Source of the DNA: Oikopleura dioica
Lineage: Eukaryota > Animalia > Chordata
Length of the DNA stretch: 64,000 nucleotides
Assembly: GCA_907165135.1 (NCBI GenBank)
Contig: OU015568.1
Location: 5,022,001-5,086,000, forward strand
Reading direction: 5' to 3'
Positions 1 through 64,000 of the stretch are shown here, piece after piece. The translations under genes were made by a program, and so were the position numbers. A model generated the notes under the pieces. The model saw only the letters and a list, made by a program, of their open reading frames with translations, searched no databases and was not told the origin of the DNA. Within the stretch, counting starts at the first letter, position 1. Each line of letters starts with the position of its first letter.

Positions 1-2
1 AT

Positions 3-887
3 TTCACCATAGAACACGCTCAAAATAATAGTCTATCCTTTTTAGATACTACCATTTACCTTGACCCGAAAACCCACAAATATGAACTTAAATTCTACCA
101 GAAACCTACATCTAGTGACACCCTTAATAATTTTAATGAATCAGTTAGCCCGATCTCCCAAAAGCTTGGACTTCTTTCAGGCGAAATATTTCGAGTAAAT
201 AACACCTGTTCCACTCCTGCTAACCTTAATAACGCTCTATCTAAACTTACTGACAAATTCGTTAAAAATAACTACCCCGTAAAACTTGTCAAATCTAAAA
301 TCAAATCTATTAAAGATTCTAACTTCACTCCTCTCGAGAAAGACCCCAATATTACCCACCGCTTCTACTTAACCCTAGATTTCACTTCACACCGAGTCAA
401 TAAAATAGGTAAAAAGATTGTTAATTTCATCCGTAAAATCACGCCAGCATATAAAGTATGTCTTGCTTTCAAAACTTTGCGCCTAGGACAAATTATCACA
501 TCTCGTCTAAAAAGAAAGCTCGATATCAACAAAAAATCCGGGATTTGCTATCAATTCGACTGTAAATGTCAGCTCACTTACATCGGTGAGACCATGCGTA
601 CCTTTCACCTTCGTAAGCGAGACCACACATTTCCAACTAGTCAAACTGCAATTAAACAACACCTTCGAAATTGCCCTGACTTTCAAAACGCATACCAAGA
701 CCATGTGAACTCTCCAGAAGTTACTTCCTTTATCTCACCTGGCGATTTCGCCAAATCTTTTTTCTCCATTCTACAAACAAACCTTCCAAATTATAATGAC
801 CGCAAACTTACCGAATCATTTCTCATAAAGTTAAACCGACCTCAACTTAACGAGCAAGGTGACTTCCGTTTCGTCCACTTTATTTGA
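3..887 (+). CDS. PLE polyprotein C-terminus (RT thumb + GIY-YIG endonuclease), 5'-partial
   Basis: Open frame from position 3 (FTIEHAQNNSLSFLDT...FYQKPT...NNYP), in frame with the 477-887 ORF. That ORF has GICYQFDCKCQLTYIGET...RKRDH and ESFLIK...LN. Confidence 0.9.
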   Translation, partial: FTIEHAQNNSLSFLDTTIYLDPKTHKYELKFYQKPTSSDTLNNFNESVSPISQKLGLLSGEIFRVNNTCSTPANLNNALSKLTDKFVKNNYPVKLVKSKIKSIKDSNFTPLEKDPNITHRFYLTLDFTSHRVNKIGKKIVNFIRKITPAYKVCLAFKTLRLGQIITSRLKRKLDINKKSGICYQFDCKCQLTYIGETMRTFHLRKRDHTFPTSQTAIKQHLRNCPDFQNAYQDHVNSPEVTSFISPGDFAKSFFSILQTNLPNYNDRKLTESFLIKLNRPQLNEQGDFRFVHFI

Positions 888-949
888 TCTAAGGCATTGT
901 TAATTGCGTATCTGGAGCCTTAGATCAAATTCCCCAGATACGCAATTAA
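882..949 (+). other. Two interleaved perfect inverted repeats (H-type pseudoknot topology)
   Basis: 882-895 pairs with 917-930 (14 bp). 900-915 pairs with 934-949 (16 bp). Confidence 0.85.
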
Positions 950-1086
950 ACTCTTTTCTAGACTTCTATTTCCATTTCTTTTCTAGACTTTCTCTCCGCT
1001 CTCATAAATTCCTCACTTACCGATCACTCGCGAGTTTCGCAAGTCACGGTGAGTCCTATTTTACTGTAGCTTCTCTTAACAACTGT

Positions 1087-1126
1087 ACTAGCCTGATGAA
1101 GGAGGGCATTCCCTCCGAAAGCTCGC
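1087..1126 (+). ncRNA. Minimal type I hammerhead ribozyme motif (PLE-associated)
   Basis: CTGATGA at 1093-1099, then A, stem II GGAGGG/CATT/CCCTCC, GAAA at 1117-1120, palindromic AGCT stem III, C17, and a short GC/GC stem I. Confidence 0.8.
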
Positions 1127-1702
1127 AATAAAACAAAAATCGAAAAAGTATATGACTTCAATGAAGATGAATATGCTTTCATTTGATCAAGGAGATTTTA
1201 TAGAATAATAATAATCAGTTCATTTAACAGAAAAGGAAACCAATAACATGCAATTCCAGCATTTGCAAAAGTTGCTTATGTTTTGTTCACTTTATAAAAT
1301 AAAGTTGTACCCACTACTGTATTATTTTCAATAAATTTTTATAGTCAGAGATAAATGGCTTTTTCAAACCGATATTGTGACTATCCTTATTTTCAGTTGT
1401 AGTTCTGTCATTCATTTCATATTCTTCTCAAATAATCTCTACAACAAACGCGGTGCGCAAATTGATTCATCTTTCCCAGATTCTGGCATTTTCTCTGTAT
1501 CTCCGCAAAGTGGTTCGATTTCGCCGCGCTCCTCCGGCCTCTGAGAAAAAGGAGAGTCCTCCACTGCGATGGAAGACCTTGTGAAAAGAAGAAGAAAGAG
1601 ACTTTTCTATTTTGAAATAATTTTATGTAATTTATTAAATAATAGAGCAAGATTTCGATACAAAAATATATAAGAAGATGAAAAGAAGAAAAGTAATGAA
1701 AA

Positions 1703-62835: not shown

Positions 62836-63648
62836 ATGGTTGATGCGACTGAGGTAGGAAGAAAGATCGAAAAAAGAGAATGAAAAATTTTCAGAAAGCC
62901 GAGATCGAGGCCAAACAAGCCGAAGAAAAAGTCATCGCCGGTTCCCAAATCGGCGTCAAATACACCGACAAGGGTGCCCGCCACGAAAAAGGCAAACTCA
63001 ACAACTTCGGCCACCTGACTTTCTGGGTCGGAAATGCGAAACAAGCGGCCGAGTGGTATTGCATTCGATTTGGCTTTGAAGAGTGGTGCTACAGAGGATT
63101 GGAGACTGGTTCGAGAGACATTTGCTCGCATGTGATCAAGCAGAATGATGTCGTTTTTGAGTTTCAATCGGCACTGCAGCCGGGAAATGAGGAGTTTGGG
63201 AAGTTTCTAGAGACTCATGCTGATGGTGTCAAAGGTATATATTGAGAAGACAGAGACCATATATCGTCTATTTGAGAGGTTCTTTCATATTTTCTGAAAA
63301 ACTCATTTAGTGAAGTCTTATTTTTTTCATTTTGTAGACTGTCATGTTTATGATTATTCAAAATTGTGTTGTCATAATCTCAAATAATATTCAAGATATC
63401 GCCTTCAACTGCGAAGACGTCGACGCCTTGATTGAGAAAGCCCGAGAAGGTGGCGCTATCGTAGTCTCCGAGCCCGAGACAATCAGCGACGAGTTCGGAT
63501 CAATTCGAACCGCCGTCTTGCAGACTTACGGCGACGTGTGCCACACCCTCATTGATCGATCGAAATATCCAGCTGATAGACATCTTCCAGGATACAAGTT
63601 TGCTTCGGAAATGAAGAACTACCGTGTTGATCCAGTCGCTGCTAAAAT
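62836..63648 (+). CDS. HPD: 4-hydroxyphenylpyruvate dioxygenase, 5' part (continues beyond the window)
   Basis: FGHLTFWVGNAKQAAEWYCIRFGF, GLETGSR, THADGVK|DIAFNCEDV, LQTYGDVCHTLIDRS. Confidence 0.93.
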
Positions 63649-63699
63649 GTACGTTAAACATATTATGATAATATCGTAAAGTTGACGAGTATTAAATAC

Positions 63700-63851
63700 A
63701 TTATCTCGTTTATTGCAGAAGCTTTTCGCCTTTCGGCATCATCAGTGCTTTAGAGACGCAAAGTTGTATCTCTTTACGTAAATACAACTTTGCGTCTCTA
63801 AAGCACTGATGATGCCGAAAGGCGAAAAGCTTCTGCAATAAACGAGATAAT
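63700..63851. repeat. Perfect 70-bp-arm palindrome in an HPD intron
   Basis: 63700-63769 is the exact reverse complement of 63782-63851, with a 12-nt spacer. Direct repeat ATATTATGATAA at 63660-63671 and 63850-63861. Confidence 0.93.
63803..63836 (+). ncRNA. Minimal type I hammerhead ribozyme motif (mirror copy on the minus strand at 63715-63748)
   Basis: GCA-CTGATGA-T-GCC(GAAA)GGC-GAAA-AGCT-TC-TGC: 3-bp stem I, GNRA-capped stem II and palindromic AAGCTT stem III. Followed by AATAAA. Confidence 0.82.
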
Positions 63852-64000
63852 ATTATGATAAGTAAAGACCATATATAAATAATCGAATTTTTCATTTGGG
63901 CTTTTTTACTTCGTTTTTATTTGATAATCTTGATCTACCATAAGCTTAACCTGTTCTCATAAAGTTAGCCTGCTGAATTGGTCATTGATTATAGTGTTTG

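Follow-up and report, generated by a model that had tools for sequence, protein, structure and literature searches.

What kind of event leaves a short, perfectly palindromic insertion with a hammerhead ribozyme motif on each strand inside the intron of a protein-coding gene? The question is raised by a 64,000-nucleotide stretch of the Oikopleura dioica genome (assembly GCA_907165135.1, contig OU015568.1, positions 5,022,001 to 5,086,000 of the forward strand; here called the window), in which a 178-bp insert lies in an intron of HPD, the gene for 4-hydroxyphenylpyruvate dioxygenase. The analysis points to a mini-copy of a canonical Penelope-like element (PLE) with a GIY-YIG endonuclease, designated family A. 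The copy would have been dead on arrival, produced from a short spliced RNA of the element's pseudo-long terminal repeat (pLTR) primed on both target strands, and is likely inert in the HPD intron; a probability of about 0.8 is assigned to this reading. The mildly new point is that, as far as their sequences tell, mini-palindromes of this kind appear to have arisen by two-strand priming as retrocopies of the entire length of a short spliced pLTR transcript. Otherwise, the insert is an ordinary, if unusually neat, product of PLE integration.

Structure of the insert and its parent element

A repeat scan delimits the insert at 63672-63849, between two copies of the 12-bp target-site duplication ATATTATGATAA, and resolves two inverted arms of 70 nt each (63700-63769 and 63782-63851) that are 100% complementary and 12 nt apart. 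This confirms the description in the initial annotation of an insert of ~180 bp with 12-bp direct repeats and perfect 70-bp arms. The final AT of the right arm doubles as the beginning of the duplication, which leaves an ambiguity of 2 nt at the right boundary. On its left side, the insert starts with 28 nt (63672-63699) that are conserved beside the arm in other genomic copies, with 95 to 99% identity over insert positions 1 to 78; they are element sequence, and the insert is therefore asymmetric. The right arm begins with ATACAAC and stops at the tail-less short end of family A (...GATAAT), overlapping the duplication by 2 nt, and the left arm extends 28 nt beyond that end. The part of the left copy that pairs with the right arm (63700-63769) is followed by CTC at 63770-63772 (GAG on the minus strand), which would correspond to an RNA 5' end of AG preceded by one extra G. 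The first 3 nt of the spacer thus belong to the left copy, and its other 8 to 9 nt are filler. The insert consists of two copies of the last ~70 nt of a spliced pLTR joined 5' end to 5' end, one of them short-ended and the other tail-ended. An origin of the spacer as a templated copy of the tail end, through an end-to-end template jump, was considered on the basis of a shared 7-nt string (CTTTACG) and was dropped, with a shuffle p value of ~0.06 to 0.1. The features of the insert and of its surroundings are listed in Table 1.

Table 1. Coordinates of the insert, its host intron and the PLE part at the start of the window
Feature	Position in window	Strand	Basis
Family B PLE, 3' part, for comparison; reverse transcriptase/endonuclease frame runs into the window; pLTR hammerhead and AATAAA at 1093-1132	1..1146	+	
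HPD intron hosting the insert; 5' splice site GTACGT at 63649	63649..64000, on to 24 bases past the window	+	exon reading frames
Target-site duplication, left copy, ATATTATGATAA	63660..63671	.	repeat scan
PLE tail, 28 nt, element sequence past the usual ...GATAAT end, left side only	63672..63699	-	genome copies
Left arm, spliced pLTR 3' segment, sense on the minus strand	63700..63772	-	repeat scan, copy comparison
Minimal hammerhead and AATAAA; predicted cleavage after C17 at 63718	63709..63745	-	pattern scan, script parse
Inter-arm spacer CTCTTTACGTAA, 12 nt	63770..63781	.	direct reading, repeat scan
Right arm, same spliced pLTR 3' segment	63782..63851	+	repeat scan, copy comparison
Exon-exon junction (..CTCTAAAG / CACTGATGA..)	63803..63804	+	other copies carry a 43-nt GT..CTAAC..AG intron there
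Minimal hammerhead and AATAAA, sense strand of the HPD pre-mRNA; predicted cleavage after C17 at 63833	63806..63842	+	pattern scan, script parse
Target-site duplication, right copy, ATATTATGATAA	63850..63861	.	repeat scan

A genome search with the insert showed that its positions 1 to 78, comprising the 28-nt tail and the first 50 nt of the left arm, match ~10 loci at 91 to 99% identity, often as inverted pairs. One of these pairs, on another chromosome (locus L031, C3:492337-495325), encloses ~3 kb and represents a full-length family A copy. Its frames match RVT_1 with an E value of 2.9e-8, above the cut-off, and GIY-YIG only marginally, with an E value of 1.5e-4 and 22.4 bits against a cut-off of 22.6. 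The inverted pLTRs of L031 are 184 nt long and perfect, and those of L032, L033, and L035 are similar. The locus reads TTTTTTTAATTG, a 22-nt tail, the inverted pLTR, the body, the direct pLTR ending in ..AATAAACGTGATAAT (..GATAAT), ATA, and TTTTTTTAATTG again, which, judged by sequence, is the layout of the window insert at full scale. By the same kind of evidence, family A is a canonical PLE with a C-terminal GIY-YIG endonuclease. In the family A pLTR, a 43-nt spliceosomal intron stops 2 nt short of the hammerhead core and is followed by the minimal hammerhead, AATAAA, and two alternative 3' ends that lie 28 nt apart with the tail between them. The suggestion that the insert was derived from a PLE with pLTR hammerheads and inverted ends is therefore borne out by the genome search and by L031 in particular.

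Intron loss and the 5' end of the copies

All 12 of the longer arms, which belong to families A and C, contain a GTAAC..CTAAC..AG segment between ..AAAG and CACUGAUGA, 2 nt before the hammerhead core; as measured in L031 (3930-3972), this pLTR intron is 43 nt long. Twelve arms carry the segment and 8 do not; both window arms lack it precisely, the mirror junction of the left arm lying at 63748/63747 on the minus strand. Because both window arms lack this 43-nt GT-AG intron, their template was most likely a spliced RNA. Further intronless copies were located by a genome search for the spliced junction. The intron-containing arms all keep conserved pLTR homology upstream (..gtCAG ATACAA in family A and ..atCAG TTCTGT in family C). 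In all six intronless insertion events (the window, L037, L040, L042, L046, and L047; families A and C), the homology of one arm starts exactly at the AG of this pLTR CAG, and the base before the AG is G, G, T, A, G, and G, respectively, and never the genomic C. The second arm of the window insert starts 2 nt later, just past the AG. Since the fixed 5' end is strictly tied to intron loss, the copies point to one discrete spliced RNA species. The putative start site, TCAGTT or TCAGAT, resembles an initiator element, and the intronless insertions look like full-length copies of a short pLTR transcript. The extra G that frequently precedes the AG may be a copied cap, in analogy with the extra G attributed to cap copying in LINE-1 and processed pseudogenes. 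Generation of the 5' end by cis- or trans-splicing at the pLTR CAG was also considered and was rejected, because the AG is retained when an acceptor would remove it and the copies share no common upstream exon or leader.

The short RNA also bears on the age of the insert. Perfect symmetry had been read as a sign of a recent event, but the arms would be identical by construction, because both copy the same short spliced RNA species. A fairly young insertion is still consistent with the 12/12 match of the duplication and with the 95 to 99% identity to other copies.

Five other mini-insertions were found in the genome, four of which are palindromic. L046 has perfect arms of 61 nt, a 14-nt spacer, a 12-bp duplication, and a tail on one side. 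L035, which was copied from unspliced RNA, comprises 113 bp with a 4-nt spacer, a 13-bp duplication, and a one-sided tail, and L037 comprises 112 bp with arms of 70 and 9 nt, a 13-bp duplication, and a one-sided tail. The arms of L042 are also 61 nt long but only 92% identical and so older; they are separated by a 29-nt spacer and flanked by an apparent 12-bp duplication, with no tail. The one-sided tail of the window insert is shared with L031, L035, L037, L044, and L046, and all five of these loci have AT-rich duplications of 12 to 13 bp. The junction, the duplication, and the arm lengths are particular to each mini-insertion, which indicates separate events. The genome search with the insert revealed no second copy of the 178-bp unit, and the minimal non-autonomous ribozyme element that had been proposed accordingly does not hold up as a family. 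A further observation concerns L047 (positions 259-300, minus strand; C4:13293680-13294180), a nonpalindromic, intronless family C mini-insertion whose first 9 nt (GAGTTCTGT) are repeated ~14 nt upstream across the filler ATAATAATAA. Repeated switching of the template at the RNA 5' end may have left this 9-nt duplication.

Hammerhead motifs, PLE families and the host intron

Read in sense orientation, each arm contains CUGAUGA, a bulged U, GCC-GAAA-GGC, GAAA, AAGCUU, and C17, followed by UGCAAUAAA (UGC, AAUAAA). Direct reading therefore agrees with the initial annotation that each arm holds an intact minimal hammerhead followed by AATAAA, with cleavage predicted after 63833, and that the layout equals that of the PLE end at 1093-1132 with a different sequence, helix II there being GGAGGG/CCCUCC. 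A loose pattern for this layout gave 20 matches in the 64-Mb genome versus 0 in a reversed-pattern control. A script parse showed the conserved core (C3-U-G-A-N-G-A9, G12-A-A14, A15.1-U16.1, and H17) in all three PLE families (A, B, and C). The four marks by which, according to Cervera and de la Pena (2014; PMC4209133), genuine PLE minimal hammerheads are recognized were found in each of these families. The likeness, which is one of sequence, comprises the CUGANGA/GAAA/C17 core, a bulged base between positions 9 and 10.1 (U in family A and A in families B and C), the G10.1-C11.1 pair (each family has a G at the opening of helix II and a C at its close), a palindromic 15.2-16.2 region that would permit a dimeric helix III and implies dimeric action (AAGCUU in families A and C and AGCU in family B), and a very short helix I. 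Helix II differs, being 3 to 4 bp long in families A and C compared with mostly 6 to 8 bp in the published metazoan examples; in family B, it is 6 bp long. Co-folding of two arms pairs AAGCUU with AAGCUU, and the L037 copy has lost the palindrome (AAGUUU). The helices differ between families in a compensatory manner (GCC/GGC, GCCG/UGGC, and GGAGGG/CCCUCC in helix II and GCA/UGC or GC/GC in helix I), which, with three families only, gives limited support.

The Rfam hammerhead models had no match at an E value of ≤10 in 63500-64000 and none at the gathering score in the whole window. This is expected because minimal motifs lack the helix III hairpin; the models also expect a longer helix I. The published PLE minimal hammerheads cleave poorly in vitro, even as dimers (PMC4209133). 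No copy was found that starts at C17+1, that is, with an end set by hammerhead cleavage.

In total, at least three PLE families (A, B, and C) are present in the genome, each with a handful of copies and all with pLTR hammerheads. Reverse transcriptase (RT) and endonuclease (EN) frames occur in families A and B; the RT match of family B has an E value of 7.8e-11, and its EN region is 27% identical to that of family A. Family C, which shares ~72 to 85% identity with the family A pLTR, has a copy of ~2.8 kb. In the family A copies, both the inverted repeats and the duplications are perfect. The paper on the Okinawa O. dioica assembly describes PLEs as almost absent (PMC8008620); the assembly nevertheless holds at least three young-looking, low-copy families. 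The family B element at the start of the window (1-1146; L043, C1:5019000-5023400) is a composite in which an inverted pLTR, bearing a tail of 24 nt, is followed by a direct pLTR, the RT/EN frame, and a second direct pLTR. Its three hammerheads are spaced 376 and 2,755 nt apart, and C2:7323285-7326455 has three hammerheads in the same orientations at exactly these spacings, so that duplication of a segment or an unmerged haplotype seems likelier than an independent insertion. In L036 (positions 620-830; C4:3661520-3661730), a family A pLTR copy is broken inside the 43-nt intron by ~170 bp that have their own inverted ends of ~25 nt (..GGTTGATCCTCGATTGGGAAG..) and internal repeats of CCTCGATTGGGAAGCG. 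The interruption looks like a small element with terminal inverted repeats nested in the pLTR.

The HPD intron measures 376 nt; subtraction of the insert and one copy of the duplication leaves 186 nt. The insertion point lies 11 nt after the 5' splice site. The upstream exon frame ends in ..VAAK plus AT at 63648, and the next exon, which follows ..TTTTAATAG (24 bases beyond the window, L039:1025), completes the ATG codon. The HPD exons were analyzed singly. As a single exon, the downstream one matches residues 176 to 237 of solved HPPD structures in a PDB sequence search (E value, 1.5e-24), and a Pfam search of single HPD exons gave no match. The exon frames and the structure match together uphold the placement of the insert in an HPD intron. 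Both flanks of the insert are single copy in the assembly. As a separate observation, the HPD exon frame at 63344-63679 crosses the 5' splice site, the duplication, and 5 insert bases before reaching a stop (..KMYVKHIMIIS), and gene calls based on open reading frames in other samples could tell filled alleles (..IMIIS) from empty ones (..IMISKDHI). P0001, a 94%-identical exon from another sample found by a word-index protein search, ends at the exon boundary and is not decisive for the allele state. An exact scan of metagenome contigs gave 0 matches for the 5' splice site with the duplication and 0 for the family A hammerhead.

In the predicted fold, the insert hairpin dominates (-135 kcal/mol, z = -19.8), and the stability of an arm taken singly does not exceed that of shuffled sequence (z = -0.07). 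A 70-bp hairpin would bury the single sense hammerhead and one AAUAAA in the HPD pre-mRNA, and the sense hammerhead would in any case need a partner to form helix III. No microRNA precursor matched the insert above the gathering score in an Rfam search at an E value of ≤10, the best match being MIR7996 with 67 bits against a threshold of 119. Several unrelated microRNA families matched on both strands below the threshold, which is typical of any long perfect hairpin. The insert has no reading frame, and it has no promoter or other sequence upstream of the putative start site. It is most likely a neutral passenger that is spliced out with the HPD intron.

Origin of the palindrome and comparison with known systems

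PLE insertions are strongly 5' truncated and often have an inverted 5'-truncated copy just upstream, a one-sided tail of 30 to 40 bp, and a pLTR hammerhead (Craig et al. 2021, PMC8557442). A purified PLE protein cleaves and extends both target strands and starts reverse transcription at two internal sites, between which the tail lies (Frangieh et al. 2024, PMC11167929). Judged by position and sequence, the 28 nt at the left side of the window insert are this published one-sided tail. In the proposed mechanism, an initiator-type start (tCAGa/t) located in the pLTR, 24 nt before the intron, would yield a short transcript that, after splicing, would measure ~72 nt to the short end or ~100 nt to the tail end. 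The element endonuclease would cut both target strands ~12 bp apart, each 3'-OH would prime reverse transcription on such an RNA, with one primer per RT entry site, and both cDNAs would run to the RNA 5' end. Equal and identical arms would result because both cDNAs run off at the same fixed 5' end, and the two cDNA ends would be joined head to head via a few filler bases. The wider proposal, that the pLTR is a self-contained minimal retrotransposition template with its own initiator-type start, whose ~100-nt, probably capped, spliced hammerhead RNA is copied to the 5' end from both cleaved strands at two RT sites bracketing the tail, has a slightly better than even chance of being right.

Several points weigh against the favored reading of the insert. 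The short pLTR transcript, its start site, and its splicing are deduced from DNA copies alone, and the interpretation of the extra G as a cap depends on an analogy. The 8 to 9 nt of filler have no explanation, the 28-nt tail is slightly below the published 30 to 40 nt, and the absence of a host function is a default assumption. In addition, at the window locus, two-ended priming is not strictly separable from copy-back from one cDNA, in which a cDNA of the same PLE RNA reaches the RNA 5' end and folds back or switches template to itself, so that the second arm is a replica of the first. Copy-back would account for arms that are 100% identical, near equal in length, and separated by a very short spacer, and the spacers of L035, L033, and L046 are also short (4 to 14 nt); the L037 junction even has a 6-nt local fold-back (GTATCT.AGATAC). 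However, a replica strand should reach the start of the first cDNA and hence include the tail, whereas the tail is one-sided and the tail-less side stops at a fixed family position (..GATAAT in family A and ..AAATG in family C) in the window, L035, L037, L046, L031, and L044. Copy-back also leaves the arms of 70 and 9 nt in L037 unexplained. The enzyme in vitro extends both strands from two start sites (PMC11167929), and a short RNA with a fixed 5' end explains equal arm length just as well. Copy-back is therefore regarded as an unlikely origin of the palindrome.

The other explanations depart further from two-strand priming on a PLE RNA. The initial annotation envisaged a non-autonomous ribozyme element of minimal size. 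Within the HPD pre-mRNA, the hairpin of this element would conceal the ribozyme and its poly(A) signal and so serve as a safety catch, or it would supply double-stranded or small interfering RNA. The overwhelmingly predicted hairpin begins 51 nt into the intron and holds the sense hammerhead and one AAUAAA, and a full copy of the short pLTR RNA could count as a minimal template. The unit does not form a repeated family, though, its junctions differ between mini-insertions, and sequence upstream of the putative start site is missing from the insert; the hammerhead is of the dimer-dependent minimal type with low in vitro activity even as a dimer (PMC4209133), and the AT-rich HPD intron already has other AATAAA-like strings. 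Such a regulatory role has no support beyond the predicted dominant hairpin and is a speculation of low probability. Assembly error deserves attention because the assembly is Nanopore based (PMC8008620) and PLE inverted structures are known to trouble assemblies (PMC8557442), so that a fold-back or chimeric long read might have made the palindrome. A fold-back would not yield a 12-bp duplication, a one-sided 28-nt tail, exact intron loss in both arms, and ends at the two canonical family 3' ends, and the same architecture, with other duplications, occurs at five further loci, four of which have a one-sided tail and one of which has none; the assembly was also polished with Illumina reads (PMC8008620). 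An artifact is thus very improbable. Inverted arms, a short spacer, flanking duplications, and, at first sight, inverted match pairs across the genome would also suit a miniature inverted-repeat transposable element or a foldback-type DNA transposon with terminal inverted repeats of ~100 bp. The 3-kb relative, however, encodes an RT and a GIY-YIG domain and no transposase, the tail sets one terminus apart from the other, each locus has different arm lengths and junctions, and the lack in both arms of an intron present in other copies requires an RNA intermediate, which makes a DNA transposon the least credible of these origins.

If the proposed template function of the pLTR is correct, mini-palindromes would be the natural traces, left in vivo, of a priming on two strands and at two sites that has until now been observed only in vitro, and they would map the transcription start of an element without RNA data. 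Six intronless mini-insertions that share a start site, most of them with a one-sided tail, provide sequence-level in vivo support for the proposed mode of PLE integration and suggest that solo pLTR transcripts serve as templates. For the host gene, the insert, as an intronic passenger, probably has no relevance; its value is a modest one for the mechanics of retroelements.

The insert can be compared with several known systems. LINE-1 twin priming likewise involves priming on the retroelement RNA by the second target strand, and it produces an inverted 5' segment. In that process, the second primer anneals internally and the two segments are different parts of the element, whereas the segments of the window insert are the same 3' end copied from two defined entry sites. 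Like the insert, retrozymes and further non-autonomous retroelements of this sort are small, noncoding, and hammerhead bearing, and they are probably mobilized by the enzymes of autonomous retroelements. Their hammerheads lie in direct repeats on one strand, from which the unit RNA is excised and circularized. The two motifs of the insert are on opposite strands, with a single sense ribozyme per transcript, and no other locus carries the same unit, so a retrozyme-like unit was rejected.

The closest resemblance is to canonical endonuclease-positive PLEs of the Penelope/Poseidon, Neptune, and Nematis types (Evgen'ev and Arkhipova 2005; PMC8557442; PMC11167929), which share with the parent element the RT with a C-terminal GIY-YIG domain, the pLTR with a hammerhead, the adjacent inverted 5' copy, the optional tail at one end, the variable target duplications (12 to 13 bp here), and the occurrence of both intron-containing and intronless copies. 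The window insert differs from them in that it is only 178 bp long and without a body, its arms are apparently full-length copies of a short RNA and not random 5' truncations, and its tail is 28 nt rather than 30 to 40 nt. The Penelope element of Drosophila virilis has a TATA-less initiator promoter within the pLTR, and an intron follows 46 bp after the start (Schostak et al. 2008, PMC2377424); the 3' limit of that intron coincides with the 5' end of hammerhead helix I (PMC4209133). The family A pLTR would likewise have an initiator-type start without a TATA box and a short intron just downstream, and in both elements the 3' end of the intron abuts helix I, so that spliced and unspliced RNAs would differ in helix I context. 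The dimensions differ, with an intron of 75 bp located 46 bp after the start in Penelope and one of 43 nt located 24 nt after the start deduced from retrocopies in O. dioica.

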